This document shows positions 27,011 through 52,052 of a stretch of 64,000 bases of DNA, piece by piece (the first letter of the stretch is position 1; each line of letters begins with the position of its first letter). A program made the translations under genes and the position numbers. The notes under the pieces are model-generated. The model had not been told where the DNA came from, searched no databases, and was given only the letters and a program-made list of their open reading frames with translations. This DNA is from Iphione sp. A-MEVVRFRX5 (Eukaryota), in contig OZ320321.1 of the NCBI GenBank assembly GCA_976226885.1, positions 62,310,001-62,374,000 of the forward strand, read 5' to 3'.

Positions 27011-28234
27011 ATGTCGAGCCAACGACGCCTAGCTGAAACGCTGACGGCATTATGCACAAATGAGGGCAACGAAGACGGGTCATTCAAGGAAGACCTTGAA
27101 AATCTCTCTATAGATGAAGAGAAGGGAGATATGGACTGTGAACAGGACGATATGGGATTCGATCTGAAGGGCCATACGATCAACAGAGAAAAGGAGGACC
27201 CTAAGAAAATCCTAACCAGAACACAAATGATCGAGGTAAGTAACGTCAAATTCTACCAAAAAGTAGATTGTTACAAAGAAAAGCATATAGAAAAAATTAA
27301 CGAAATTATGCTTGCCATATTTGAGTGCAAATTTGAAAAGAAACAAGTAATAATGAGCATCCCTGAAACCGCCAAAGACTTAATGAATAACAGCGGGATT
27401 ATTCCTACTAAACGGAAAAGGTCGATCGAAAATGAAAACTGTAATTCTTCCACAACCCAAAATCCCAAAAGACAGAAAACAGACACCCTTCTGACAAAAA
27501 AACTAATTGATAGTGAACCCCGATCAACACTAATCTCTAACCACAATTCTATCCCTGAACAGAATCAACCATGGCTGAAAAGGCTAAATCAACAGCAAGT
27601 CGAGACTTGGAACAACACCCAACGAAAAATAGCTCTAGAGACGAAGAGCAAAGCCAGACACGATTTTGTCAAACACAGTTTAAACCGCGGCTTTCAGATG
27701 AGGGCCTGTATCAATACGTCGCAGTTACCAGCCTACTGCAAGGAAGAGCAGGAACTCTTGATAAGAATGAGTGAACAGCGACAACGCTCCGGCAGAGTTG
27801 AAATGGAAATTTTGCTGACCTTTCTGAAAGAAAAAATGGAAAGAGCACGCGAAGAAGCATGTGAAGAGATTGCAAAAGTAGAATCATATTTGAACTCCAA
27901 AGATCTGGCCGACAGCAGGGAATACACCAGACAATGCCGACACAAAGTCGATAAAGATACAAGAGATGATCTAAAGCGCAGAGAGAGCAACATTCTGATG
28001 ACTTCCCTCACAACGAACGTAGTTGCCCCTGTAAGTCAAGCATATTTGCGCCCTTTTCGGGGCCAGGGCCTGAGAGGAACAAGCCAGACACAACGGGGAC
28101 CCTCCAGGCCCATTCAAACGAAACGCCCAGCAACAGACACGCTGAGAGAGACTCACCCACCAAAGAGATCATCTACATGGTCCCTAAGCGAGCAGGAGGC
28201 ATTGGTGGTCTCAGCAATGCGAAAAAACTGGTAA
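27011..28234 (+). CDS. PLE ORF1, 407 aa, charged/helical (coiled-coil-like), with a basic NLS-like KRKR and an Arg/Pro-rich tail
   Basis: Long open frame inside the element, upstream of and overlapping the RT ORF; no catalytic motif recognised. Confidence 0.8.
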   Translation: MSSQRRLAETLTALCTNEGNEDGSFKEDLENLSIDEEKGDMDCEQDDMGFDLKGHTINREKEDPKKILTRTQMIEVSNVKFYQKVDCYKEKHIEKINEIMLAIFECKFEKKQVIMSIPETAKDLMNNSGIIPTKRKRSIENENCNSSTTQNPKRQKTDTLLTKKLIDSEPRSTLISNHNSIPEQNQPWLKRLNQQQVETWNNTQRKIALETKSKARHDFVKHSLNRGFQMRACINTSQLPAYCKEEQELLIRMSEQRQRSGRVEMEILLTFLKEKMERAREEACEEIAKVESYLNSKDLADSREYTRQCRHKVDKDTRDDLKRRESNILMTSLTTNVVAPVSQAYLRPFRGQGLRGTSQTQRGPSRPIQTKRPATDTLRETHPPKRSSTWSLSEQEALVVSAMRKNW

Positions 28235-30987
28235 GTAGTACCAACACTAGCTATCTAACTCAGAATCGCTATTCAATCCTAAGCACATTAGACGTCGAAA
28301 TCAAAAACGAAAATGACCAAGCAACAACACTTGATAAAAATGCGGAAGATTTGCCGCATAAAGGACCAAAAAAATCACAAACGAAATCCCCAGACGACAA
28401 CCCTTTAACCAAAATTCAATGCGCTAGTAGATACAATGCTAATGATATTCGTTACTATTTCAGAAACATGGACCTTCAGAAGCCGCAGAAACACAGCGCG
28501 ACACATGAAGATATGGTGACCACAGCGCAGGAACGAAACCAAGAAAACAATCAGAGAAAAGAAGAAAAACAACCTATCGAAATCGATGAGAAAACTAACC
28601 CAGAAAATAAAGACACAACCAATACTAACACTGAACAAAGTTTTTGTCCAATAAAAAAATCGAATTCAAAAAAATGTATTGACTATGAATGCTTAGACAT
28701 AATAACGGATAATATCAAAAATACAAAGGTGATAGAGAAAGAGAAAGTAATAAACTTGTCAAAATATGAGTTAACTGGAGCAGAATGCTCAGCTCTAGAA
28801 AAGGGACTATCTTTCTGTCCAACGCCGGGAGAACTGGATATAGGTGAAAAGAAGGAAGATTTAGATCGCTTCCATAACAAGCTAAGGTTCAAAAACAATT
28901 TTAGAGATAAACCACGGAAAAATATCGAACCACACCTAAAAAACCTGAAAAAAATAAGCAAAACAGACAAACAGAGAAGAGGTCCAAATGGACCACCATT
29001 ATTGGAAACGATGATCACTCTAAACAACCTCGGCACTGAGCAAATAAATAGCCGCAACCCCACGGTCAAGAATATGGGTATAGAAGAAAAAACCGCCATC
29101 AAGACTCTCAGGTCAAATAGAAACATCATTATAAAAAAGGCAGACAAGGGTGGAGCAGTAGTAGTAATGGATAAAGACGAGTATAGGAAAGAAGGAGAAA
29201 AACAATTGAATAATAAAACATTTTATAGACCCTGCAAAGAAGACTGCACAATGGTCTACAAGAAAAAAATAGATACAGACATCCAGTCTCTGGTTAGGAG
29301 TGGAGAGATAGACCCCGAGACAGGTCGACTTTTAATAACCGAGAAACCTCGCACCCCACAACTATACCTACTACCAAAAATTCATAAAAATATATACCCT
29401 CCCCCTGGACGACCAGTCATCTCTGCCAATAACAGTGCTACAGAAAAATTATCAGCGTATGTCGACCAGTACCTTCAACCACTTGCCAAAGAACAACTTT
29501 CTTACATCAAAGACACTGGCGATTTTCTGAGGAAGATATCAAACGTCAAATCCACAAAAAAAGACATCCTAGTCACCCTTGATGTGACTTCACTGTATAC
29601 CAACATCCCAAATAAGGAGGGCCTGGAAGCAGCGAAAAAGAACCTTGACACACACAGGAACCCAACAAGTGGCCCATCAAATGAAACAATTGTCCACTTG
29701 CTAGAAACAGTGCTCACCCACAATAATTTCCAGTTTGACAATAAACACTATTTACAAATAGGAGGAACTGCAATGGGAACAAGACTAGCGCCATCATATG
29801 CAAACATCTTTATGGGCAACTTCGAAGATACACATGTGCATAACTATAAACTACAACCGAAACTGTATGTCAGATTCATCAACGACATATTCATGGTTTG
29901 GCAACACGGGGAAGAGAACCTACTAACCTTCATAGAACACCTACAAACAAGACACCCAAATATCAAATTTACTCTGAACCATTCGAAAGATTCAGTAGAG
30001 TTCTTGGATACAACCATCAGAATGGACAATGAAGGGACGCTTAGTTCAGACCTGTACGTAAAAACAACTGATGCCAACACCACCCTACATTACCAATCAG
30101 CACACCCACACACAATGAAGAAAAACATCCCTTACAGTCAGTTCCTGAGGATAAGAAGGATCTGTTGCAATGACAGAGACTTCTTGGAACAGAGCTACAA
30201 GAAAGCAAAATTACTGACCAAACGGGGATATCCCTACAATATTGTAAGCAGAGGCCTTCATGAAGCAGCAAAAAAATCAAGAAAAACACTGTTAGAACCT
30301 AAAAAGATCGAAAATATGACAGAAGAAACCAGTCAGAAAAATATCTTTGTAACGGGATACCACCCAGACAACCAAAAGGTAGAAAGTATTGTCCGTCGAA
30401 ATTGGGAAATACTCCAAAAATCTAAAAAAACAAGAGATCTAGCAAAAGATGGCCTATTAATAGCATATAGAAGACCCAAAAATCTAAGAGATATGCTAGT
30501 AAGAGCTAGGTTTGTAGATACCGAACCAACCAAAGGCAACAAAAAGAGTCTAAACGTTTGCACCAAACGAGGTTGCAGATACTGTCCGCTACTTAATAAA
30601 ACTGGACACATCAAATGTAAATACAACAACAGGGAATATAGCACCAAAACACATATAACATGCAACAGCAGCAACGTCAAATATGCCCTAAGTTGCAAAA
30701 ATTGCAATATCTCCTATGTGGGACAAACCAAAAGGAGAATAAAAGACCGTTTCAAGAATCATCTATACGATGTCATGAAGAAAAAGGATAAAAATCTGAT
30801 CACAGAACATTTCAACACACACTGTGGGAAAAGTGGATTCACAATCTCTGTCGTGGACTTCATACACCAGCCACCTGAGAGTAACTCCTCTGCTATTTTG
30901 AGGGATAAGCTAGAAATCAAATGGATCCACAGACTACACACCCTAACCCCACATGGCCTCAACATCCTAGATGGGGAGTACACCTAA
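28177..30987 (+). CDS. PLE reverse transcriptase plus C-terminal GIY-YIG endonuclease (936 aa from the first ATG)
   Basis: IIIKKADKGGAVVVMD, LYLLPKIHK..PPPGRPVIS, LVTLDVTSLYTNIP, GTAMGTRLAPSYANIFM, RFINDIF (YxDD position), FLDTTI, CTKRGCRYC linker, NVKY..C..C...YVGQT..RFKNH, E.KWI..L.T..P.GLN. Confidence 0.95.
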   Translation: MVPKRAGGIGGLSNAKKLVSSTNTSYLTQNRYSILSTLDVEIKNENDQATTLDKNAEDLPHKGPKKSQTKSPDDNPLTKIQCASRYNANDIRYYFRNMDLQKPQKHSATHEDMVTTAQERNQENNQRKEEKQPIEIDEKTNPENKDTTNTNTEQSFCPIKKSNSKKCIDYECLDIITDNIKNTKVIEKEKVINLSKYELTGAECSALEKGLSFCPTPGELDIGEKKEDLDRFHNKLRFKNNFRDKPRKNIEPHLKNLKKISKTDKQRRGPNGPPLLETMITLNNLGTEQINSRNPTVKNMGIEEKTAIKTLRSNRNIIIKKADKGGAVVVMDKDEYRKEGEKQLNNKTFYRPCKEDCTMVYKKKIDTDIQSLVRSGEIDPETGRLLITEKPRTPQLYLLPKIHKNIYPPPGRPVISANNSATEKLSAYVDQYLQPLAKEQLSYIKDTGDFLRKISNVKSTKKDILVTLDVTSLYTNIPNKEGLEAAKKNLDTHRNPTSGPSNETIVHLLETVLTHNNFQFDNKHYLQIGGTAMGTRLAPSYANIFMGNFEDTHVHNYKLQPKLYVRFINDIFMVWQHGEENLLTFIEHLQTRHPNIKFTLNHSKDSVEFLDTTIRMDNEGTLSSDLYVKTTDANTTLHYQSAHPHTMKKNIPYSQFLRIRRICCNDRDFLEQSYKKAKLLTKRGYPYNIVSRGLHEAAKKSRKTLLEPKKIENMTEETSQKNIFVTGYHPDNQKVESIVRRNWEILQKSKKTRDLAKDGLLIAYRRPKNLRDMLVRARFVDTEPTKGNKKSLNVCTKRGCRYCPLLNKTGHIKCKYNNREYSTKTHITCNSSNVKYALSCKNCNISYVGQTKRRIKDRFKNHLYDVMKKKDKNLITEHFNTHCGKSGFTISVVDFIHQPPESNSSAILRDKLEIKWIHRLHTLTPHGLNILDGEYT

Positions 30988-31368: not shown

Positions 31369-33856
31369 CAATTCCAAAACAGGATACAGTCATTGTGGCA
31401 GGAAATATAAATGCCAAAGTGGGAATGGGTAGACATGCCCTTGGAAGCTGAAATGACAATGGAGCAAGATTTGTCCAGTTTTGTAGTATCAATGACCTAG
31501 TAATAGGAGGCTCTCTGTTCCAGCACAAAGATATCCATAAATAGACATCTTCAGATGGAAAGACAAGAAACCAAATATATCACATTGCCATCAACAAAAA
31601 TGGTGTGGTAGACTAAGAGATGTAAGAGTCCATAAATGATACTGCAAATGACCACAACTAATTATACCAAAACTGCAAATAAAACGTCATGCTACTAAGA
31701 AGAAATCAACAGTCAAACAAAGTTGGAAGACACTGTAATAAGGAATCAATTTCAAATACAGCTTCAAAACCAGTTTGAAGAACTAGAGAATGTGGAAGAA
31801 GATGACATCCCAACCATCTGGGACAACTTGGTCAGATTTATAAATGAGACTGCAGAAAGTGTGCTAGGAAGAAAAAAATCCAAAAAGGAAGAGTGAATAT
31901 CCCAAGAAACATGGCATCTGATTGATCAATGACAATCATTACAACAATGTATCCCAAATTCTACATCAGAATCCCAGAAACAAGAAAGAAAAAATTCAAT
32001 ACAGAAAAAAAGATAAAGAAGTCAAGGGAAGTGCAAGGAAGAATAAGAAGAAAAAGTATGAGAGAAAAGCCACACAGGCTGAAAAGGCAGCAAGGAAAGG
32101 CAACACCAAAGAACTGTATAAGATTACAAACAAGTCATGTGAATGAAAAGTACCTCAAGCAGTGCCAGTGAAAGATAGACAAGGAAAAGTGTTGACATTT
32201 GATGAAGAAAAGAGCAAACGATGCCTGGAGCATTTCTCAAAACTTCCAAATAGACCACCACCAGATCAAATACCAGATATCTCTACCTCACCTTATCCAC
32301 CACTTAATATTGATTGCAGTGAACCCAGAATAGATGAGATTCAAAAAGCCATTAAAGACGTAAAAGTTGAAAAATCTCCAGGCAAAGACATGATAACTGC
32401 AGAAATGATGAAACATGGTGGGGAAGAGCTTCACTAATACATCCAATTGCTATGTAGAAAATTTTGGCACAAAGAAGTCCCACAGATCGGAAAAGAGGTT
32501 TGATATGTAAACTACCTGAGAAAGGTAGTGTAGCAATTGGAGAGGGATTAAATTGCTGTCACTTGTTGGAAAAGTCTTTAACATTGTGAAGTTGAGAATG
32601 AGAAATACAGTAGATGGGAGACTAAGAGAAAACCAACCAGGCTTCAGAGGTGGAAGATCATGCAAAGACTCGATTTTTGTTTTAAGGTTGGTCATTAAAA
32701 AGATGTTGCAGTTCCAACAGTCAATGGTTATCAACTTCATTGAGTTTGAAAAGGCCTTTGACATGGTTGATTGAGAAACACTATAAACAATAATGAAACA
32801 TTACAGCATCCCAGATAAATACGTCAACCTCTTTAAGACCCTTATATTTGATCCGAATGCTGTGTACATCTTGATGATAGTGAAACAACATCATGGTTCC
32901 TAATAACAATGGGAGTATAGCAGGGCTGCATACTGTCTCCATTGCTGTTTGGACTTGTTATAATTGGGTCATGGAAGAATCCCTAAAACAAGAAAGTTGT
33001 GGAACATACTGGTACAGAAACAAGCAGCTTGAAGATCTTGATTTTGCAGATGATATTGCACTAATTTCACCAGAGAAGCAGGAACTGCAACACAAGACTG
33101 ACTTATCAGAAAATTATGCAAATAGTATTGGATTGAGAAGCAGTACCAAGAAGACCAAAGTACTTGAAATAAGGACCACAAGAAAGTAACAATACTATCA
33201 GACTACCAAGGAAAGACCTGGAAAAAGTACCAACATTTCAATACCTCGGTAGCTACAGAGCAGGTGATGGGTCCATTGAGGAGGAAGTAAATGTAAGGAT
33301 TGGAAAAGCTACCAGTTCATTCAGAAGGCTAAACAAAATATGGAATAATGGCAAAATCAAATCAAACACCAAAATGAAACTTTACAAATCAACTGTAAAT
33401 TCAGTTTTATTATACAGTGCAGAGACATGGCAGATAACTCAACATACAACACACAGACTAAATGTATTCAATAACAACTACATAAGAAAAATTTAGAACA
33501 TCAAATGGTTCTGTCATGTTTCATTGAAAGAGATCAAGGAATGCACACAATAAACAGATCCATCTGAAATACTGAAAAAAGAAGGTTAACATAGTCAGGA
33601 CGTATGATCAGGATGTAAAGAGACAGAATCAACAAACAGTGTATGGAGTGGTGACCTCAAGGTAAAAGTAGGAGAGGAAGACCCAAAATGTCTTGGAAGG
33701 AGAGATTGGTGAATGACTTTAGAATGACTTTAGAAATTAGAACATCATACAAAAAAGCAAAGAAAATGGCTCAGGACAGAAAGGGATGATTTTCTCCGGT
33801 AGCTGCCTCATGTGCTTCCTAGCATGAGAAGAATTTATGTAAGGTAAGGTAAGGTA
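31369..33856 (+). pseudogene. RTE-type LINE, remainder of the endonuclease plus RT, with many stops/frameshifts and a (TAAGG)n 3' tail
   Basis: NTIPKQDTVIVAGNINAKVG continues the EN domain; RT motifs KSPGKDMITAEM, ENQPGFRGGRSC, FIEFEKAFDMVD, GV*QGCILSPLLFGL, LDFADDIAL; ends GTAAGGTAAGGTAAGGTA at 33839-33856. Confidence 0.92.
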
Positions 33857-36668
33857 TGATAGTACTGACTGCATGGAATGGAAGTATAGTACAATTCTCT
33901 AACAGTGCACCATATCATACACTGTATATCTGCAATGCTTAACAACAATGATACTGTGCTGTGTATTGGACCTGTCGCTGGTGGTTGAGTAAATGGGTAC
34001 CACCAACACGTTTTATATTGTTTGTGATGTCATAATGTGAATCAATCAATCAAATTGCTTAAAATTGCGACAATTTTGTGACAAGTAAAAGTTAAATCCG
34101 CAGTACCCACTTCTTCAATGTTCAGCAATTGGTGCTAATATTAGTGTACCAATGCCTTACATTAGTGTACCAATGCCTTACATTAGACAACATAAAGGAA
34201 TGAAAAAGACAGTTTTAGAGATGTCAAACGCAAAAACGTCTCAGCAAAATGTATGAGAGTTAACGTAAGAGAAAGCTTAACAAGTCCGAACAGACCTTTG
34301 TTTGGTAGCCTTAGAAGTCTATCTATCTCCGTGAAAAAAGTGTTTATCAAGCATGTTGGATTCTTCCGATCGTAACCAAGAAAACACCTCGCTTTTTCTG
34401 CATAGTAGAAAAAACAAATTCATGCGTCAGGTAAGCTGTATCCTTGCAGCTCGGTGAGTGACTCGTAACAATATCTTGAGAGCAATAACTGTAACTTAAA
34501 TATTTAATGCAAGAAATACGTCGATAACTTTCAATTTGGGGACAAATTGATTTCTGTATTCATCAGGGTAATTATGCCAGTCCCTCGACATTACCGGGGC
34601 AAACCTCATGGAAGTATTCAACAACCTCAGGCTCGATTCCTTTCAGCGGCCGCATTCTGATATATGTGCGTAGTTTCCTAGAAAGTCCTGGCACTTCGAT
34701 GGCGCCGTTCTAACTTTAAGACACCCTGGAGAAGTTACATAATTTATGGTATAAATAAATCGCAAATACAGGCTCTCGTCCCTAACCAACGATGAGACCA
34801 TACTCCTGGGGGGGACCCCACAATATCAGAAGCACTGGATGGAATATGACTGCTAGAGTCGTATGTATGTATCGGTTGACGTACGATGCTTGCTTGGCAT
34901 CAGACAGCTTAGGGTATGATGCGGTGACTGATTACCCAAAAGACGTGTGCCTGCAAAACTCGCACGCAAGCAGTGACGTGGTGGCTTGTTTACCGGCCAC
35001 AGACCGAAAAGAAACCTCCGCTCATCAATCTTTCAATCCGCCCATTCTCCTCCAGCCGTGCACCTCCGGGGAAGACTATTTCTGACATGATGTCTTTAAA
35101 CATAAGACGTTCCCCCCGCCTAAACAGCCTCTCCTTCCGTCCTTCCATAGCTTATAATGTACGATGTCTTAAAGTACGTCTTACTAAACTATATGCCCTT
35201 GTAGCCGTATGCTTAGATAACTCACTCAGAACGGCGCACTGGGCGTGTTCGATTTCACGTGAATTGATAGTGATGGCGTTCTCGATCGAGAGACAAGCGA
35301 GTTTTACCATTACATGTGTACATGTAGCAGGTGTCTGTATCATCAGCGAAGGCCTAGCCTGGCAATGAGGTAACCTGGCACCGAAGCACCCTCGTTCTAT
35401 TCATAGTCATTGTCTTAGCAGTCACGAAAGCTACCGCTACCAGACCTTGCTGCAACACCGACCCTATTTGTTCCCACCGCTTAGAAGCTTTGAGGATGCC
35501 TCCATCATTGACGCCTCCGGCAAACAGGGTGTACCTATCTCAGTACAGTTTGTTTGTTGATGACATCATCTTCGTGAACTGAAGAGTTCTGCTCTATAGT
35601 ATGAGACGATTCTGATCATAATGAAGTACTAATACTATCATTGCTTATGCACCATACTAGCACAGGTATGAAAGTTTAAGATGTGATAATTATCACTATG
35701 TACTCTTTAAAAAACACACGCAACTGGTACGGACTTTCACAAACAACTTCTTTAGGCCCGCTTTCCTTACCTGTGTTGGTGTCTGCGAGGCTGTGAGAGA
35801 CCTCTGTGTGCATCACCATACAGGGTATCCTTCACGCAGCCTCACACATCCTCGTGGAGACGGGTGTCTTTTGACCCTCCACTGAAGCTGTGTAAGACTG
35901 ACCAATTTCATGATAAAAGCAGCAAAAATCGGTGAACTTGATGGGAAAATATATGACAATTGACGAATTTGAAGAGGAAAAGTGGTGAAAACTGATAAAA
36001 TTGATTGGAAAAGTAAGAAAACAATAAAGATGTGCAGAAATGTGCTTTTAGCTGCCTGCTACAAAGGATATATCCTCTATCCTACTGTGTATTCTTGCAT
36101 GAAATTAACAAGTAGTGTTCAATAATGAACAACACATGCTCAAACAAACCCACGGCACACATGCACACAGAAGACGCCCTCCATTGAAATCCCAATGCTC
36201 TTTTAAAAAAAAACACACATCAACGCACCCCCAACACACTCAGACACCAAATGCAAGTGAGGAAACCGGGCCTTAAACCACAAAGCCTCGACGTTATCAC
36301 TCCGCTTGTCACTGTGTTTCTCCAATCAAGCACCATCGCTGACGAGCATGCACGCAACTGCCGATGCTGCTGTCGCTGGCAGAGGGCCGGTGGCTTGTAT
36401 CTTGGAGCTGCTCGCGTCTGCATTGAGTGAGCAACTCGGCCCCCGCTGGCAGGTGGGCATGGCTGATGAGGTAAACATCGAGAAGGAGAAAGGGAGAGCC
36501 TAAGTGGTCGGCAAGACACACAGACGTTTGGCAGACGGAGTTCCTTAGGGGGAGGGGGAGAGCTTCCTTTAGAGAGGCCTTTTCAAGAACCCACAGTTCC
36601 TAAGGATAAAAACTCCAGTCTGATCATCAGTGACGAAGGAGGAGAAAGGGTGGTAGCCTTTGCTGCAT

Positions 36669-36676
36669 TATAAAAA
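36669..36676 (+). promoter_or_regulatory. TATA box upstream of the gag-like ORF
   Basis: TATAAAAA ~190 nt upstream of a GCCATG start. Confidence 0.5.
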
Positions 36677-36856
36677 GCTGCCCTGCCGGACGTTCTTCCA
36701 TACGGGTCTTCCATTTACACACAGCATATACGAGTGTCCGACTGTTGCCATCTCCCACTAACAGGATCCAAGCCACTCAGGCACTGGAAGTTGTCTACAG
36801 AACTGACTGGAGTGTATATATATCTACCTACCTACAGGAGGGTGCATATCGTCGCC

Positions 36857-37738
36857 ATGTCTATGATCATTACATATCCCAAACGGCCGAAGGGGCCCTC
36901 CATCACCTGCTTCGCCGACGTGAAGCGGATCGCGCCGCGTATGGGGCTCACCGACAGCACGATGCAGCTGCTGGTGGAGCGGGGCCTGGGCTCCGTCCAG
37001 GGCATGAGAGAGATGACCGAGGGCGATATCGAGGGGCTTCCCTTGTACACCGGTCAGCAGCTCGCCCTCTCCAAGGTCATCACCCACCTGAACGAGGTCC
37101 TCGCCGGCTACGAGATCAACGACGCCATCCGCGAAGAGAAGGAAGAGGGGGAGGAGGAGGGGGGCAGCGGGTCGCAGTCGAAGGACGGGGCGGAGAAGGA
37201 CGCGGGGAAAGGCGCCGACGATAAGGAAGGTGAGGGCGGGGCCGGGGTCGACCTGACTAAAGCCGGGATCCTGAATACGGACGGCTACCCGTCGGGGCAG
37301 GCGGTCGGGCCGCGCACCATGCCCCGGGCCCACGAGTTCCTCGTCGGGAAGACGTGCGGCCGGGAGCTGAGCATGGAGGAGTTCATCTACGGTAATCTGC
37401 TCATCCTCGAGTACATGATGGAGCAGGAGAGCGCGGAGGTCCGCGCTTACATGAAGCACGTCCGCTTCATGGTGCTCAAGCTGGTGCACGGCTACTCCCT
37501 CGAGCAGGTTGTCTATTACGACTACGCCCTACGCACCAAGATCGAGCGAGAGGGCGTCTACATGCCCCTGGAGGCCGACCAGGATCTCCTCGAGAAATAC
37601 GTCCGGTTACATAAAGAAGGGAAGGAGAACAAGACCAAGAAGACTAAGAAGGCAGGCACCGGTAAAGGTGCCAAGACGACTAAAGGTGGCAAGGGCAAGA
37701 AGAAGAGCAAAGACGAGGATGAGGTTATCGGTTTATAG
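36857..37738 (+). CDS. Intronless 293-aa protein: SAM-like N-terminus, acidic/Gly linker, DIRS/Ngaro gag-like helical core and Lys-rich tail (candidate domesticated gag)
   Basis: Open frame (ORF track 36734-37738) with strongly GC3-rich codons and a GTCGCCATG start. DIEGLPLYTGQQLAL resembles SAM helices. EEFIYGNLLILE..Y.KHVRF...YSLEQVVYYDYALR aligns by eye with the Ngaro gag relic at ~48790-49000. Confidence 0.7.
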   Translation: MSMIITYPKRPKGPSITCFADVKRIAPRMGLTDSTMQLLVERGLGSVQGMREMTEGDIEGLPLYTGQQLALSKVITHLNEVLAGYEINDAIREEKEEGEEEGGSGSQSKDGAEKDAGKGADDKEGEGGAGVDLTKAGILNTDGYPSGQAVGPRTMPRAHEFLVGKTCGRELSMEEFIYGNLLILEYMMEQESAEVRAYMKHVRFMVLKLVHGYSLEQVVYYDYALRTKIEREGVYMPLEADQDLLEKYVRLHKEGKENKTKKTKKAGTGKGAKTTKGGKGKKKSKDEDEVIGL

Positions 37739-40193
37739 GATTAATCTGCGAAAAAAAGCTGTTAGGAACTTCCATCGCAGAGGGCTAAGGACAAATTCCT
37801 AGTTTTTACATATAAATCGCTTAACCTTTGCCAAAACTGGATCAAATAACTTATATCTAGTATTAGAAAGCAAAGTATTTCTATTATTCTTATAGTTCTA
37901 GGCTAGGTATACTGCTGTTGACAAGACTTGCTTATCATTTGTATGAATTGAGGTTGCTATATTTCCGTCATTCTATACTATTTCAGTGAGTTAAGTCTAC
38001 ACTATGTCTACTTCAAAATATATGTTAAGTTATGATATGATTTAGCATTTAAGTGTAGTTTTGAAAGGTAGATCATGATATCGAATATTGTTTTCATGTT
38101 TAACTTGATATCTTGGACAGCAAATATTATAATTATGAGATTTTTTGATAGCTTAGTGTATTCAAGGAATTTCTATTTATCAGATTTAGCCTTTTAAGTT
38201 GTCCCGATACTTTGATATTAATAATTGCCCCATTACTTTGTTTGCAATGGTATGAATTGGCTTCACAATTTCTAAAAGTAATTTTACTGTTAAAAAGTTG
38301 CACATTACTTCGGTAATTTCAATGTTACAACATTGTTTATTACATTTGTCAGAATATGTAGTCGTGTATCATAGGAAATCAATTAGACGAGTTGAGAGAG
38401 AATGGACAAGGCTCTGTCGCGTAGAGTTGCATGGTTTGTGTGATGTTGACGCCATCCATGGCTTTCCTTCCCTGTGCTTTGTATGCTTACATTTTCCAAC
38501 CAAATATCTTCACGACACATACATGAGCTATAAAATTGATGCTATCAAGTAGTAGAATGTACATGGTAAACTGCTGTTGAAGCAAAAGAGAGGAACTGGT
38601 TCTCTTTTGTGTTGAACCGTATCCCGGATGCATGAGAATCAAAGCGTACGTCAATGAATTTGGTGTTGTAAACATTTCAGAGTGTAAAGGTTACTGAGGT
38701 ATTGACGTTTTCTGGATTAAACCGAAAACATGTGGTCGCCCGAGTGTGTTACAATAGCGGCTCCAGCGATGTAGCCATGGAAATACACAGATATTGTTCG
38801 GCCGGCAGTTGTTTACAACCTCGCTACTGAAGGCGTGACTACAGGGGTTCGTTCGTCCCATAGGAAAACATAAATATTTCATGTATTACCAGCTTGTTTG
38901 TCTCTAAAGACATAGAGGCCCTGAGGTAAAATGAATTTCTACAGGGATGTCAGAAATAGATATCAAGAGATGTGGCTACAACTGCTGAGTGATACGCATT
39001 ATAAATGCATGTTTATTGATTTTAGCTCGCTAGGATTTTCTTAGTTGTTTCGATGAATTTTATCTCCGACACATACACATGCGTATGTTTATACACAAAA
39101 ATACTACAACCATCCTTCTGTATGCCGTACCATTGCGGCAAAAGTGATAGACATATTAGATATCTTTTGTATCTTGTATTCTCCCCACCGTCAGTTAATA
39201 AAATACTAATTGCTCTTGTGAGTACCACCTCTCTCGCACGATCGTCACTTGTGTGTCTCGGCACTACAAAGGTAAGAGCTGATCTCATGAAAGACTGGAC
39301 CGCCATCAACCTCGCTCTATCAGAAAAAAAATTAATCCCAGACCTGTGAAGATCGGTTATAGAAGCGATTGTATTGAAATAACAATGTAACTCGTTAACA
39401 ATGTTGCAACCGACAAGCACACGAGGAAGATTTTAAAAACACCAGCAGGATGTTCCTTATTTATGAAGGGATGCGACAGCCTGGTTCACATATGATTGCC
39501 CTTAACAGCTGTCTCCTGGCTGACCCCGGGGGAAAAGTGGGGATAATGGTGTCACCGTGCTGTTGGCATAAAATGGTTAACGCTATTTCTCTAATATACA
39601 GTGCGGTTTTCGTGAGAAAGGTCGTTTTTCTGTATAGAAAATAATAATCAGCCTAGTACAATAAAAAACGACTAAAATCAAACGTTATACTCATGCAGCG
39701 ATCAACACCATAAACTCCATTTCTTATATACATATATACATGTATACATGCATGCATGTACGCATGTACGTATTGAGGTCCTTTGTATGCATGCATACTT
39801 GTGCACTGTACATGTATGTATGTATGTATAAATGTATGTATGTAGGTAGGTAGGTAGGTATCTATCTATGTATGCCTGCATATATGTATGTACAGAGGAA
39901 CCCGTCTGACCCGATATACATGTATATCTATAGCGAAGACGATGGTATCAAAACTCCCTATGATATGAACGGTCCGCCTGAGATGTTATTTTTCGTACTT
40001 GGACATAGCACAATATGGGTTCGGAATCTTCACTGTCCATCAGAAGTGTTGTCCTGATCACAGACAACGTGAACATAAAACTCAAAACTCTTTTATTGAA
40101 CACAACTGGAATATCGTCTATAAATTCTATTGAGACCCTTTGATATATAAGTAAATACTGTAGTGCTATAATAATACTCTATTTACCAGTGAA

Positions 40194-41603
40194 CTACTTT
40201 TGATTTAGCACGTCCCCTCCGAAGAAGATGCAGAGTACGAACTTGCCGGCAAAGTTAATCATGAAGGCGACTTCCGCCACGTCCCTGGCGGCGGCGCCGT
40301 CAATGTAGCGACACACGGGGACCTCGTCCATGAAATGCTGCCACAGCAACACCACCCACGTGATGATGTACGGCACGCAGAGCACACAGTAGGCCACCAA
40401 GATGGCCGCCACCATGACGGTGGCGTCCTTCTCGAAGAGCGCGCGCGCCACGATGGTCGAGCTGAGCCGTCGCGGGCGCAGCTTCCAGGCGGGCAGGTTG
40501 CGTAGGATCATCACCGCCAGCCCGACCAGAACGACGAAGGGCAGGGCGACGACCAGCACCACCGTCAGGATGGTCAGGCCCAGCGAGAGCACGGGCGACA
40601 TGGCGATGGGGATGCAGGAGCGGGCGATGCCGCCGCCGCCGCCCGGAGCGGCGGTGTCTGCCACAGCGAGGCTGTCCCAGACGAAGAGGACGTGCAGGTT
40701 GGTGAGCACGGCCGCCACGGCGCAGTAGCAGACGCCGTGTCGCGCCGCCTTCAGCGTCGGGTAGCGCGAGCGCTTGTAGGGCGTGGAGGCGAGTAGTAGG
40801 CGGTCGGCGCCCAGAGCGACGAGCAGCCAGGAGGAGAGGAAACGCAGCACGTAGGTGCAGTAGGTGAGGGCCTTGCAGGCGATGGCGTTGGAGTCGTACA
40901 GGGTCTCCACTCCCCCGACAGTGACGGCCCCGCTCCCTCCCGGAGAAGCGGAGGAGGTGGACGAGACGCTGCCAATCGCGGCGTAGAAGACGCTCATCCA
41001 CTTCCGGGGCACGTAGCTCAGGAGCGACAGCGTGTCGACGATGCCGACGACCAGGAGGTAGAGACTGAACGGGTAGCGCCGGAGACCCTTGGAGCGGAAG
41101 ACGATGACCGAGAGGCCGTTCAGCAAGAAGGCCACCACCAGGAGGAAGGCGATGCCGTAGAGGTAGGCCGACTGGCTGGCGCGCACGATGGCCGAGTCGC
41201 AGCTGCTCACGTTCCGCAGGAAGAAGTCCGTGCCGTTGATGCTGTTGTAATAGAAATCCGTTGGGTAGTCCCCTCCGTAGCCGCCACCGCTGACGACGCC
41301 GCCGCCGCCGCTGGCGCCCTCCGCGCGGCTGGCGTCGTCGTACCCGGCGCCCCGGTGCAGATCGGCCGCCGTCACTTGCGGCGCGGGGCCTTCGTGCGGA
41401 GGGAAGGCGACGACGTCGTCGTAGCTTTTCAGCACGTCGAGTAAGTCGATGGACTCCTCGTCGTCGGCAAACTCCATCTCGTCGATCGAGCCATACAGCG
41501 AAGGCGGAAGCTCCTGGTCCCTTGTCACTTCCGGTCGCAGGAGTCTACCTCGAGGCCGGAAGGGACGCCGCCGCCGTGTCCACCGGAAGACACCTTGCGC
41601 CAT
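40194..41603 (-). CDS. Intronless class A (rhodopsin-like) GPCR, probable peptide receptor, 469 aa
   Basis: Seven hydrophobic segments; LLNGL (TM1 N), VVGIVD (TM2 D), C at the top of TM3, ALGADRLL (DRY-like), LCVPY (TM6 P), INFAGKF (TM7); N-glycosylation sequons NGT and NVS; GC3-rich. Alternative strong-Kozak start at 41477 (MEFADD). Confidence 0.92.
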   Translation of the reverse strand: MAQGVFRWTRRRRPFRPRGRLLRPEVTRDQELPPSLYGSIDEMEFADDEESIDLLDVLKSYDDVVAFPPHEGPAPQVTAADLHRGAGYDDASRAEGASGGGGVVSGGGYGGDYPTDFYYNSINGTDFFLRNVSSCDSAIVRASQSAYLYGIAFLLVVAFLLNGLSVIVFRSKGLRRYPFSLYLLVVGIVDTLSLLSYVPRKWMSVFYAAIGSVSSTSSASPGGSGAVTVGGVETLYDSNAIACKALTYCTYVLRFLSSWLLVALGADRLLLASTPYKRSRYPTLKAARHGVCYCAVAAVLTNLHVLFVWDSLAVADTAAPGGGGGIARSCIPIAMSPVLSLGLTILTVVLVVALPFVVLVGLAVMILRNLPAWKLRPRRLSSTIVARALFEKDATVMVAAILVAYCVLCVPYIITWVVLLWQHFMDEVPVCRYIDGAAARDVAEVAFMINFAGKFVLCIFFGGDVLNQK

Positions 41604-41821
41604 CTGTGATGTTCTACTTACTTACGTCTTGAGGGATTTTTTGTAAAAGATGTGACTCTCCTACTGCGAACCTCATCATTTCCGCTCCGGGGACCACACG
41701 CCCTGCAGAATAGATCTCTTTTAGAAGTGTCAGTGATTGAGGGCTGGGACAACAATACTCTCATGAAGAAACTTATTTTGGAGACATGGGCTAAGGTGGT
41801 CTCTCCATGCATACATACTTG

Positions 41822-42136
41822 AGGCCAAAAAAATAGGAGTGTTTCTGGTGACGACCAGCCAAAAACCTAGGTGGGGAGGAGGGGTATCTTTTTCTTAAGA
41901 TTTTTTTCCAGAATCTTCCTCTGGTTTTCAATGATAATAGAGACAATCTCAAGAATTTTGACCAGTCTATATGAGCTTTACATTTTTTGGGGAATTTCCA
42001 TAGATTCTGTTGTTTTTCTACTGAATTTACAAAAAATATGTGCCGTGAAAACACATATCTAAGGAAATTCAGCCTTGGAAACTCTTTAGGGCCAAACTAG
42101 GTAGGGGTGGGTTACCAGAAACACACCTATTTTTTC
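41822..42136 (-). mobile_element. MITE family A, copy 2
   Basis: Reverse complement of 9304-9650 with the same TIRs. Confidence 0.8.
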
Positions 42137-48243: not shown

Positions 48244-51200
48244 AATTAGTATATTATATTAATATATATTTGTTGAATCTCCTAGCTACCCGCTATTGGA
48301 ACACACTGTAGCTATGTGATTACCATGATGCATATACATTCCTTCTCAACCGCCACACTTGCTATAAAACTTTTTGGCTTGTGAGATGTGTTTTGCTACG
48401 ATGGGCAAATACTGCAAGAAGTGTAGAAAGAACCATCCTCCACCAGTGGGCAAAAATTGCTCATTTCAAGCGGAGATGAGGGCTGAGGTGGAGGAAGTTT
48501 TTCAAGGAAGTCGGAAGAAAATGATGTAAGTACGCGCTTACAGAGACTGGAGAACTTGATTGAGACCCTGGTTGTGGGTGGAGACTTCAGGAAGAAAGGA
48601 GCAGGATAGTCAATCAACAAGCAGAGCGAGTCGGATTCCGACAAATCATCCGAGTTTGAAAGTGAAGATTCTTCAGATTGAGAATTCGATGAGGAGGTGA
48701 AGAAGCTGGACAAGCCAGCCAGGAAAAAGAGGAGTAACAGACTGAAAAAGTTTGACATTGTGCATTATACTGATGAGGAGAGAGTATCACAGGTTTTGAA
48801 CTTCTGACCGTAGGCTCTTTGGACCTTCTGAAGAAAATGTTGGAGAAGAAGAAAGACATGCATGTCCTCCTATATTGACCATCTCTTATTCCTGGCCACG
48901 AATGCTCCCACAAGAGTTTACAACATCAAATCTCTTGTGAACTATGATGCAGAGTTGAGGAGGAAAGCAGCTCGATGCAGTACAAGTGTGTTTTGCTAAC
49001 GGCACACGGAGGCAAATCATAAATACATGTGGATGGACGCCACAAGGGGTGTTGAGGAGCAGAATCTAGGGAAGAAATTGAAGAAAGGTGACCGTACATG
49101 CTTTAAGTACAATGCCTGGGAGTGTGTGGATCCTCGTTGCATCTGTCATCATAGGTTCTTGAATTGTTCAGCAAGTGGCCACTGCGCCTTTGAATGCTTC
49201 GCAACCAAACGCTCGGAGGGCGTCGAGGCGAAGAAGACAAAAGGTACGTCTAAACAGAATGGATGCCAGGAAACAACAGTGGACTCTTAAGAAACACAAA
49301 GACGATAAGGTATTTGTGATAGAGCTAGAGGATGGTTATATTTTATCCAGTGATTGAGAGTGTGTTTATGGTTGTGATGACACTGTTGTTGTGGAAAGCA
49401 CTGTTATAGACAGTGATGGTGTTGACAATGTCACTGTGGTCACAGGTGATGAGTAGGAGGATGTTATTTACTTTAGGAAACAGATCTTGGACTCCTGTTT
49501 ACATGAATTTGTGTGTGACGAGGAGCAAATTGATGACAATGTGGTGGTAAGAGTGCTCTCTGGCGGGAGGGTAACTCATTCCCTGTATCTGTTGACTGCA
49601 TTCGTGGTGATTGCATGGTATTGGTGACATTGTTTGTGACCTGAAACCTTTCTATTGGCGTTTTGGTTTCTGCTGTAGCCCTATTCCTGTGGAAGATGTC
49701 TTGCTTGTATGGTTTGGTCTTGAAGAGGGCTTCAAGTGGACAAAGATTGTAATGCCAACTATGATCATGACAATTATTTATCAATTTTAAGAGAATATTT
49801 CAGGCACCAGATGGACGAAAAAGACAACTCAGAGCTTAAGTCAGGGTTTATTAGCATATGTGATTTTAAGCCTGTCTGTGTGAATGCACTGGCTGGAGTC
49901 AAGACGAGTGACAGCTCATTACGTCTGATCACTGACTGCTCAATGCCGGAAGGATTGGCCATCAATAAATTTATGTCTACTACTCATAAGAAATTCAACT
50001 ACAATTCTGTTGAAAATGTTGCTGATGTCTTAAGAGGTTGGGAGTACATGGCAGTGATTGACATTAAAAATGCATACAGAAGTGTCTGTTTACCCTAAGC
50101 ACAGAGAATATCAAGGCTTCCCCTGTAGAATTAATGAAGAAAGGAAATTCGTTGTGAATAACATGCTATGCTTCGGTTTGAAGTGTGCAACTTTTTTGTT
50201 TTCACTGCTTTCAGATCGAAGATGTATTATCACTTGAATATGTAGATAAAAAGTCCCTGGAACAGTTGGCTTTTGCAGATTGTTCAACAGTAGTCAAGGG
50301 AGGGTGTACCTATTTTAGACATCTGTATAACTTTGTAAACTCATTTGATACCTAGAAGGAGAGGAAGGTTCTAGGTGAGGCGATTGTATGTGATCTCAAC
50401 GGGAGGATCTGTTTTGTTGATATTTTTTCTGCCTTTAGTTACTCAGTTGAACATGTTGAGCAGAAGCCACAATTTGATTGTTATCAGATACATATAAATG
50501 TGCTAGAGCTGCGGCCAATTGAATTAGCCTAAAACAATGGGGTGGGGCACTCAGAGACTCTACTCTGCACTTAATCAGAGATAATATATGTGCTCTGTAT
50601 ATATATGTTGCGCACAGGAAGAAGCAAGGATGTCACTTGTTTAAACTGGTTAAGCCAGTATCTATGATATTAATTTTGTAGTGGACTATATCCGCAGTGA
50701 GGATAATGTAATTGCAGATGCACTTTCATGTAGTTATGATTTGAACATGTGTAGAAGTTTACTAAATCTGCAGTGGGCGATTGGTTGTTGTTGCAATAAA
50801 AGAATGCATTCCCTTTACAGGGAGAATGAGGAAGTTGCAGGAGAGAGTGAGGCATTTGAACAATTCAGCAGTGGAAAACACCAGGAAAATGAGAGCAATA
50901 CGATGGAACCCTTACCTGAGTTACTGTAGGGCAGTAGGTTGTAGTGTTCTTCCTTGTAGTGTTATGCAATTATGCCTATACCTTGCCTTTCTTTCTGAGA
51001 GATTATGTTTTCCATCTATTAAGAACTATCTGTCAGCGTTTGTGTACAATTGCAGGGCTAGGGACTTAAGTGTTAAGTATGAAGGGAATTTCTTTGTAGA
51101 GGGGAAGATTCAAAGGTTGAAAGGTTCAAAGAGGGTTAGGAGTGTACCTGTCAAGAAAGCATGAGCATTGGATATATCCGATTTAATTAGACTGTACCCA

Positions 51201-52052
51201 TGTTTTAATATGAACTCTTTGCTTGATCTTATGTGTTGGCTAGCACGTTTAGCAGCTTCAGATGTTTTTTATGAAAGGAAATGTTTTTGTCCCCACAAGG
51301 TCTTAGGTGGTCAGATATCAAGTTTGTTAGTGAAGGCTTATTAGTGTGTGCCAGTAGGGATAAGACATTCGTGGAGGCTAGTGATAGAGTGCGTATTCCT
51401 TTTGCCTATGTGGATAGTAAAGGTTTTTGTTTAGTCTCGCTTTTAAAAGCATGGAAGATTTCATCGAGGGCATCAGAAGAAGACTGAATTTTTCTAACAG
51501 GAAACGTAGGGTTTTACATGTTTTAACTTACAACATGTTTAGAGACCAACTCAGAGGGGCCTTTGCGTCATGCCATCTCTGGGGTGTAACCTCTCACTCA
51601 TTCAGGAGGGAGGGAGCAAGTTTTTAGCTAGACAAGGTGTTTCCCTCCAAGAAATTAGTTTCAGAGGGACATGGAAATCCAACTGTGTACATGTATATGA
51701 ATAAAATAATTAGGATATTAATGAATTATTTACTTTTGATGCTGTTATATTTACAAGCCTGTGATTTGGGTTCGGAGGCTTCATATTGGAACTCCCACCT
51801 ACTTTCTTGTTAGTCATTCATAATATATATCCCATATAATTAGTATAATTATATTAGTATATATTTGTTGACACTCCTAGTTACCCACTGTGGGAATGCA
51901 CTGTAGCTATGTGATTACTATGACGCATATACATTCCTTTTCAACCGCCACACTCGCTACCAAAAAATCGTTGTTGTTGTTGATTGCTGCATTAAAAAGG
52001 CTTCATATTGGAACTCCCACCCGCTTGTTTGTTAGTCATTCATGATATATAT
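48244..52052 (+). mobile_element. Decayed Ngaro-type (DIRS order) tyrosine-recombinase retrotransposon with split direct repeats A1-ORFs-B1-A2-B2
   Basis: A1 48244-48364 / A2 51838-51959; B1 51776-51830 / B2 51998-52052. Gag relic (MGKYCKKCRKNHPPPVGKNC at 48401; C..YN...C....C..H...C...GH...C knuckle). RT relic (RLITDCSMP, DIKNAYRSV, LCFGLKCA), RNase H relic (NVIADALS), YR relic (HSFRREGASF, RGTWKS). Confidence 0.9.

Follow-up and report, generated by a model that had tools for sequence, protein, structure and literature searches.

Is the intronless open reading frame (ORF) at positions 36857-37738 of this stretch of Iphione sp. DNA a retrotransposon gene that has become a host gene and, if so, from which element did it come? 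The window, by which we mean the whole 64,000 nucleotides analysed, corresponds to C19:62310001-62374000 of a 1.18-Gb assembly, and all genome searches covered that assembly. From the letters of the window, the original prediction had proposed that the gag gene of a tyrosine recombinase (YR) retrotransposon was captured here. New animal genes have repeatedly arisen by the domestication of gag, and to our knowledge nearly all known cases involve long terminal repeat (LTR) elements and capsid folds. With a probability of about 80%, we conclude that the ORF is a host gene derived from the first ORF (ORF1) of a Ngaro-like element and that its protein would act as a self-assembling scaffold. We show in the following where the gene came from, how its protein is built, that it is conserved and that the zinc fingers were lost, whereas the scaffold role is what we infer. 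The gene and the parts of its protein are, with the supporting evidence in brackets:

36857..37738, + strand: domesticated ORF1 gene, intronless coding sequence (CDS) of 293 amino acids (aa) plus TAG (ORF, ortholog conservation, GC content at third codon positions, GC3)
36890..37114, + strand: SAM-like five-helix domain, residues 12-86 (predicted local distance difference test, pLDDT, >90)
37115..37303, + strand: acidic Gly/Glu-rich disordered linker, residues 87-149 (pLDDT 42-59; proportion of nonsynonymous differences, pN, 0.36-0.60)
37304..37606, + strand: helical core in common with Ngaro ORF1, residues 150-250 (hhalign; model)
37607..37735, + strand: Lys-rich basic tail, residues 251-293, predicted to be disordered (alignments; zinc-finger profile absent)

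On the + strand, the frame is open from 36734 onwards, with the first ATG in frame at 36857 and a TAG stop whose last letter is 37738. A stop-free, intronless ORF had been predicted and is what we find, with a product of 293 aa. GC3 is 0.85 in the ORF and 0.88 in the adjoining gene for a G protein-coupled receptor (GPCR), compared to 0.40-0.46 in the ORFs of a Penelope-like element and 0.41-0.44 in ORF1 and reverse transcriptase (RT) of the Ngaro elements that reside in this genome; the ORF thus resembles the neighbouring host gene and not the transposable elements (TEs), as had been noted. Likewise, no RT, RNase H (RH) or tyrosine recombinase was found near the ORF when three full Ngaro protein sets were compared to the window with tblastn (all matches fall into 48862-51700, so that neither RT nor YR is present within 11 kb), and a search of 33000-41000 revealed neither direct nor inverted repeats. 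The profile of the CCCH/CCHC zinc fingers has no match in 35000-42000, whereas a relative on C1 that served as positive control scored 47 bits. Two details of the original prediction hold only in part. The start codon, described as good, has the favourable G at -3 but a T at +4 (GCCATGT) and is adequate, short of ideal. The TATA box is present, 188 nt 5' of the ATG and with no ATG in between, but it is not conserved in orthologs:

36670..36678, + strand: TATA-like box TATAAAAAG, a possible core promoter (read directly; weak evidence)

If the ORF is a host gene, it should differ from a mobile element in copy number, neighbourhood and mode of evolution. The genome holds one copy, one paralog of 53% identity and one distant relative with two exons. 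Among other sequence collections, a word search found three orthologs and a profile search a fourth, so that the closest relatives are the following:

C4:93506985-93507797: C4 paralog, 53% identity, intact frame of 277 aa (genome search)
P0001: 69-73% identity; its true start, MSMIITYP, is the same as in the window protein
P0002: 54% identity; orthologous to the C4 paralog and sampled together with P0001
P0003: 45% identity; from a second sample, N-terminus clipped by the gene caller and complete in the DNA
P0004: 46% identity; from the Logan sequencing-run assembly ERR14368248

Conservation among the orthologs starts at the ATG and ends inside the C-terminal tail, and the residues before the stop are identical in the window protein and P0001. 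Between species, only the CDS can be aligned at the DNA level and the flanks are unalignable. Nevertheless, the orthologs keep the same neighbour, which was one of the checks proposed originally: a convergent GPCR gene is found in three genomes.

40194..41603, - strand: rhodopsin-type GPCR gene of the window, convergent with the ORF, 2.5 kb away (Pfam 7tm_1)
L039: GPCR gene, convergent, 4.3 kb downstream of the ORF ortholog, 48% identity to the window GPCR
ctg38689: GPCR gene, convergent, 12.5 kb downstream, 67% identity to the window GPCR
ctg38901 (second haplotype): GPCR gene, convergent, about 15 kb downstream, 67% identity to the window GPCR

The C4 paralog has a different fixed neighbour. 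The only CCDC85 gene of the genome lies convergent and 12 kb downstream of it (C4:93494259-93494780), and the same arrangement is found at the P0002 locus; each of the two genomes with the paralog thus has CCDC85 beside it.

To describe selection, we used pN and a comparison of haplotypes in place of dN/dS, which is not quotable for most pairs since the proportion of synonymous differences (pS) between species is saturated at 0.6-0.9 and even exceeds 0.75 from opposite GC3. In the comparison of the window protein to P0001, pN amounts to 0.08 for the SAM-like domain and 0.13 for the core, whereas the linker evolves nearly freely. The two haplotypes of a related species differ at 10 of 861 nucleotides, affecting eight codons synonymously and two nonsynonymously; by our own arithmetic (about 78% nonsynonymous sites), this pattern has P ~2e-4 under neutrality. 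Furthermore, the CDS is better conserved than its surroundings, as it is 98.8% identical between the haplotypes compared to 95.8% for the block spanning the gene and its flanks and 92-98% for other flanking blocks. These patterns indicate that both folded domains are under purifying selection. With one copy, one paralog, conserved neighbours and constrained domains, the status as host gene is well supported at the level of sequence comparison.

A side observation concerns base composition. The window ORF and the P0001 gene (L037) differ strongly in GC3 (0.85 vs 0.49), and as a result pS reaches 0.90, more than expected at random. The region around the window gene, where the GPCR gene is also GC3-rich (0.88), may be subject to GC-biased conversion or strong codon bias.

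What kind of protein does the gene encode? We built an AlphaFold2 model of the window protein from an alignment of 35 sequences. It contains two confident domains, one of five helices (residues 12-86) and one of three long and two short helices (residues 150-250), and the rest is disordered. For the N-terminal domain, most of the top 50 VIA structural matches are SAM domains, the best being the SAM domain of BICC1 (Z 8.3, rmsd 1.7, 62 of 63 residues). Further VIA matches are to EphA5, Hyphen, liprin, LEAFY and tankyrase, and Foldseek recovers the same families. In contrast, the Pfam SAM models (SAM_1/SAM_2 clan) match neither the window protein nor any of the 35 alignment members; P0026 alone matches SAM_1, with an E-value of 0.0035 that is below the cut-off. 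When the profile of the domain was compared to the sequences of solved structures, it matched the SAM domain of RIBEYE (CtBP2 isoform 2; E 2.4e-7 over 61 residues) and that of SASH3 (7e-4). We call the domain SAM-like and divergent because the Pfam SAM models are not reached while the domain profile matches solved SAM domains; it is a divergent subfamily. The SAM-like domain that had been predicted is therefore borne out by fold matches to solved SAM domains.

The core also folds confidently when modelled alone (pLDDT 92.7, predicted template modelling score 0.85). Its fold matches ESM-Atlas clusters of molluscs (546 members), basidiomycetes and oomycetes with TM scores of 0.72-0.74; these clusters are unnamed, and the most similar one consists mostly of mollusc sequences. 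The Lys-rich tail ends at the point where ORF1 proteins run on into CCCH and CCHC fingers. This agrees with the earlier reading that the tail occupies the position of a zinc finger, as intact ORF1 proteins have a Lys-rich linker there, followed by CCCH and CCHC fingers. Searches with the full protein (Pfam, PDB sequences, ESM-Atlas features) gave no informative match; Med8 (E 0.049), SRP43 (E 0.33) and Perkinsozoa clusters came up, which we regard as noise.

Which element supplied these domains? The resident Ngaro elements are the first candidates. At least 46 distant matches in the genome align to residues ~172-270 of the window protein with 24-33% identity, and these matches belong to complete elements, in which ORF1, the matching frame, precedes RT/RH and then the recombinase. 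ORF1 encodes 310-325 aa, RT/RH 690-730 aa (Pfam RVT_1) and the recombinase 300-350 aa (Pfam Phage_integrase). Three copies have the split direct repeats by which Ngaro is defined (A1...B1-A2-B2), and these are 97-100% identical; in L048, for instance, the A repeats are at 1733-1886 and 5885-6038 and the B repeats at 5844-5889 and 6061-6106. Comparing five host proteins to 26 intact resident ORF1 proteins with hhalign gave a probability of 97.2% and an E-value of 3.3e-11 over 96 columns, with residues 167-263 of the host protein aligned to 159-255 of ORF1.

The resident ORF1 proteins (for instance those of L040, L045 and L048) thus resemble the window protein in the helical core (24-33% identity) and in the Lys-rich stretch that follows it. 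They differ at both ends. They begin with a CX2CX3HX7C knuckle, which is followed by a short coiled coil, a Ser/Asp-rich linker and a basic patch, so that knuckle and coiled coil stand in place of the SAM-like domain. Then come the conserved helical core, the Lys-rich stretch, a CCCH finger and a CCHC knuckle; the fingers are thus kept. Furthermore, the resident genes are multicopy and AT-rich at third codon positions, and each lies inside split direct repeats and ends in an in-frame TGA followed by RT/RH and YR. With respect to the last feature, ORF1 and RT/RH occupy one frame with a single TGA between them in L040 (1398-1400), L041 (1327-1329), L042 (1507-1509) and L045 (8948-8950, - strand), and the triplets after the TGA are TGG, ACG, TGT and AGG, respectively.

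A relic of this family lies 11 kb downstream of the ORF, as had been predicted, and it is indeed frameshifted:

48862..51700, + strand: degenerate knuckle-type Ngaro copy (tblastn, queried with the ORF1, RT and YR proteins of three intact copies)

Its pieces (ORF1 48862-49257, RT 49724-50900, YR 50772-51700) lie in several frames and have 29-51% identity to the intact copies. When compared to the window with tblastn, the window protein matches itself alone. The core had been aligned to the relic by eye, and the register of that alignment was right, since it equals that of the hhalign comparison to the 26 ORF1 proteins, but the pairwise alignment is not significant by tblastn.

A closer source emerges from protein collections. 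Searching 1.84 billion cluster representatives with the host profile yielded only 29 proteins at E<=0.001, with E-values down to 2.5e-28 for ORF1 proteins adjoining RT and YR. Beyond the orthologs, about 15 of the 29 have 300-365 aa and consist of a SAM-like N-terminal domain, a linker, the core and CCCH/CCHC fingers. Several of them are encoded in recognizable elements: P0006 and P0005 are each followed immediately by an RVT_1 ORF on 3-kb contigs (L058 and L059), P0012 is an ORF1 fused to RT, and P0010 heads a 4.8-kb contig (L060) with ORF1, RT and a Phage_integrase ORF. The RT adjoining P0006 is 34% identical to the resident Ngaro RT/RH over 503 aa (E 9e-96). On each of the contigs L057, L058, L059 and L060, ORF1 shares its frame with the RT ORF. 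These contigs represent a lineage of Ngaro-like elements that has a SAM-like domain, and not a zinc knuckle, at the start of ORF1 (SAM-type elements hereafter). We found no description in the literature of a gag or ORF1 with a SAM domain from a tyrosine-recombinase retrotransposon.

The N-terminal domains of the host proteins and of the SAM-type ORF1 proteins are homologous by hhalign (98.3%, E 1.1e-14). With P0005 as query, the best match in the genome was the window gene (41%, E 7e-18), followed by the C4 paralog, and all resident ORF1 proteins ranked below these two. Since SAM-type ORF1 proteins share the layout and the homology of the N-terminal domain, and P0005 matches the window gene best, we conclude that both folded domains of the host protein descend, as judged from these homologies, from a Ngaro-like lineage with a SAM-type ORF1. 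The resident elements, among them the relic, are cousins that have only the core in common with the host gene, and not the donor. Regarding the original prediction, capture of the gag of a YR retrotransposon as a host gene stands, with profile homology, single copy, synteny, purifying selection and no TE hallmarks; the origin of the core from an element stands too. To be amended is that the SAM-like domain also comes from ORF1 and was not added by the host, and that the donor was a SAM-type lineage and not the family of the relic.

As for the donor lineage in this genome, a search with the profile of the N-terminal domain matched four places only, which are the C19, C4 and C1 genes and a 141-aa open frame on C22 (G000:C22:20498813-20498968, - strand, E 2.9e-7); as a single-sequence query, the domain matched only the two paralogs. 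The profile search thus found no SAM-type element family in this genome.

We next consider the relationship of host and element proteins in a tree inferred from 104 columns of the core. The host sequences, six in number, are monophyletic (98/92), as are the resident knuckle-type ORF1 proteins (100/100), and the host clade joins SAM-type ORF1 proteins in an unresolved group that is separated from the knuckle type (100/100). Within the host clade, P0003 branches first, then P0004, and then the pair of window protein and P0001 next to the pair of C4 paralog and P0002. The duplication is therefore older than the split from the species of ERZ25767047. We consider the transfer to have been from element to host because both types of element possess the core as well as the fingers and the core fold recurs in Atlas clusters, and because the host genes are intronless, few and without fingers.

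Taken together, the history is as follows. The donor ORF1 encoded a SAM-like domain, a low-complexity linker, a helical core of ~100 residues, a Lys-rich stretch and the CCCH and CCHC fingers. The host copy retains all parts from the SAM-like domain to the Lys-rich stretch, whereas the fingers, the split direct repeats and the genes for RT/RNase H and recombinase are gone. Afterwards, the gene duplicated once, giving rise to the C19 and C4 copies, which have persisted in fixed neighbourhoods with purifying selection on the two folded domains. In functional terms, the assembly modules of a retroelement protein would have been retained and its specific RNA-binding fingers dropped. The SAM-like domain is expected to polymerise head to tail because its closest solved relative, the RIBEYE SAM domain, does so in vitro. 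The helical core would supply a second contact, and the basic tail may serve nuclear import and/or non-specific binding to nucleic acid or chromatin. The most likely role is thus that of a self-assembling scaffold in the nucleus or in a ribonucleoprotein (RNP); we put it first because both domains have been strongly conserved over the long term. The next most likely role is that of a dominant-negative partner that poisons the particle assembly of SAM-type Ngaro ORF1 proteins.

Several points weigh against this interpretation. 'Gag' is a positional name only, as the core has no match to a solved fold: comparing it to PDB folds (Foldseek and VIA wide) returned only sub-noise matches to helical bundles, the best of which is an unrelated protein (Z 6.4). 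Among the best 50 fold matches of the core there is no capsid, and the weak matches in small helical bundles leave a remote kinship possible. Self-association of the window protein is an expectation from the analogy to other SAM domains. All SAM-type elements come from short metagenome contigs. Furthermore, the tree does not decide whether the host clade is nested in the SAM-type ORF1 proteins or sister to them (31/0), so that the direction for the SAM-like domain rests on parsimony, that is, on finger loss, an intronless gene and a narrow distribution. Finally, the TATA box is absent from five of five orthologous or paralogous upstream regions, and the orthologs have neither name nor accession in the protein collection.

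The alternative that survives best agrees with us on the origin and differs in the role. The protein could be a restriction factor, that is, a finger-less ORF1 protein that co-assembles with SAM-type Ngaro ORF1 proteins through the SAM-like domain and the core and blocks RNP formation. This would explain why exactly the two protein-protein modules were kept and the RNA-binding fingers are gone, and it would fit a genome in which no SAM-type element was found while knuckle-type Ngaro elements are young and abundant. Restriction factors usually evolve fast and under positive selection, and known gag-like examples such as Fv1 and enJS56A1 act on retroviruses. Here, in contrast, conservation of the two domains is strong (pN 0.08-0.13, with pS saturated; two nonsynonymous to eight synonymous codons) and the gene pair is older than a species split. 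As the absence of SAM-type elements may also reflect the history of the lineage alone, we consider restriction a possible but unlikely role.

A bolder version is less probable still, namely that the gene is a dominant-negative, long-lived 'decoy Gag' whose two copies explain the absence of SAM-type Ngaro elements. In its wider form, this idea extends to a common origin of the SAM domain with that of RIBEYE; if true, a retroelement would have contributed to the synaptic ribbon.

The direction of transfer could also be reversed, such that a host gene with SAM-like domain and core is ancestral and was captured as ORF1 by a Ngaro lineage. The host clade does attach at the unresolved base of the SAM-type group, and this SAM subtype is also found in proteins without the core (P0026, P0027 and RIBEYE). 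However, the core and the CCCH/CCHC fingers are common to SAM-type and knuckle-type ORF1 proteins, and the core is old in elements, as the mollusc, fungal and oomycete clusters suggest, whereas the host clade is narrow with its six sequences. Capture by an element would require that homologous fingers were gained, whereas a transfer from element to host needs one loss, and the host genes are intronless. We therefore regard the reversed direction as very unlikely, and retain descent of the host gene from a Ngaro-like ORF1.

Two further alternatives can be set aside. That the ORF is still mobile, as a solo or non-autonomous copy of ORF1 or a recent fragment, would fit its lack of introns and the TE-rich window, in which a Penelope-like element precedes the ORF by 6 kb and the Ngaro relic follows it at 11 kb, but it is a single copy without terminal repeats, under purifying selection and with a GC3 of 0.85 compared to 0.41 in resident ORF1, and it is refuted by synteny, given the same neighbour in three genomes with flanks diverged past alignment. 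Least credible of all is that the similarity to ORF1 arose by chance or from the composition of helical, Lys-rich proteins: pairwise identity to resident ORF1 is indeed only 24-33% and the tblastn match to the relic is not significant, but two domains have separate strong profile-profile scores (E 3.3e-11 and 1.1e-14), hmmsearch reaches an E-value of 2.5e-28 among 1.84 billion proteins, and the aligned part is the folded core and not the low-complexity tail.

How does the window gene compare to known domesticated genes? The original prediction knew of no characterised case from the DIRS order; there is one, as LAP2alpha of TMPO and ZNF451 in mammals derive from a DIRS1-like ORF1 (Abascal et al. 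2015, PMC4495291). Like the window gene, LAP2alpha and the corresponding part of ZNF451 (ZNF451-L2a) stem from the first, positional 'gag' ORF of a tyrosine-recombinase element of the order DIRS, are intronless and evolve under purifying selection. The product in the case of LAP2alpha is a nuclear protein module in mammals (PMC4495291). The differences are that LAP2alpha and ZNF451-L2a are exons inserted in existing genes and subject to alternative splicing, whereas the window gene is free-standing, and that their donor was DIRS1-like with inverted repeats, whereas the donor of the window gene would be Ngaro-like with split direct repeats. DIRS-like ORF1 proteins of Xenopus are reported to carry the LAP2alpha domain (PMC9210276). 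We considered kinship of the window protein to LAP2alpha (PF11560) and rejected it, as Pfam matches none of the 35 alignment members at E<=1 and neither a PDB sequence nor a fold match was found. A domestication of VIPER in trypanosomatids is cited in PMC6681497. In the literature we found no host gene derived from Ngaro. What is new is thus the Ngaro superfamily as the source and the free-standing gene, whereas the DIRS order itself has precedent.

Better known are the gag-derived host genes from LTR retrotransposons, such as Arc, PEG10, PNMA, SIRH/RTL and the SCAN domain. They resemble the window gene in that a structural gene of a retroelement became a conserved single-copy gene and lost the pol functions; the zinc knuckle was kept or lost, varying by gene. 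They differ in having Ty3/Metaviridae capsid folds and in being vertebrate genes, whereas the window gene is from an invertebrate, has a core without a solved fold and carries a SAM-like assembly module.

For this module, RIBEYE is the best comparison. Its A-domain is vertebrate-specific and encoded by one large exon, and RIBEYE as a whole is a vertebrate synaptic-ribbon protein; the comparison with the window protein is confined to the SAM domain. There, both have five helices with a long last helix, and RIBEYE gives the best match among solved sequences. The RIBEYE SAM domain (PDB 9WBJ/9WBK) forms head-to-tail double-helical filaments in vitro (bioRxiv 10.64898/2026.04.28.721253).

Our analysis adds a free-standing, duplicated and syntenically conserved invertebrate gene that probably derives from the Ngaro superfamily. 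It also uncovers a whole Ngaro-like lineage that builds ORF1 around a SAM domain, which suggests that RNPs may be assembled without a capsid by SAM polymerisation. The foldable core (pLDDT 93) could seed a family model for the otherwise unannotated ORF1 of Ngaro, and the gene would be a tractable system for asking how the assembly module of a retroelement is reused.

Lastly, some relatives of the gene deserve mention. The relative on C1 (G000:C1:20516183-20517838, - strand; locus L031, 8039-8854 and 7184-7549) is very divergent, single-copy and has a GC3 of 0.75. It has two exons, which we searched one by one, and the intron between them, ~0.5-0.65 kb long, interrupts the core. The CCCH/CCHC fingers (47 bits) are kept along with the SAM-like domain and the core, and there is no RT or YR downstream. 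It looks like a second ORF1-derived host gene. An independent domestication is suggested because its ortholog P0013 groups with the element ORF1 proteins P0014 and P0020 (99/97), apart from the window gene. The sole named member of the family is P0022, the uncharacterized LOC135499728 (XP_064646738.1) of the nemertean Lineus longissimus. Together with P0018 (JGI), it is on a long branch and has the SAM-like domain and the core, no zinc fingers and a long, charged, repetitive tail; the two may reflect a further independent domestication in nemerteans.

Within the window itself, the Penelope-like element extends over 27011-30987 (+ strand), about 6 kb upstream of the ORF. It has two ORFs of 407 and 936 aa that overlap at 28177-28234, and its ORF2 carries a C-terminal GIY-YIG domain. 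A strong skew of A over T runs across 26-34 kb of the window.

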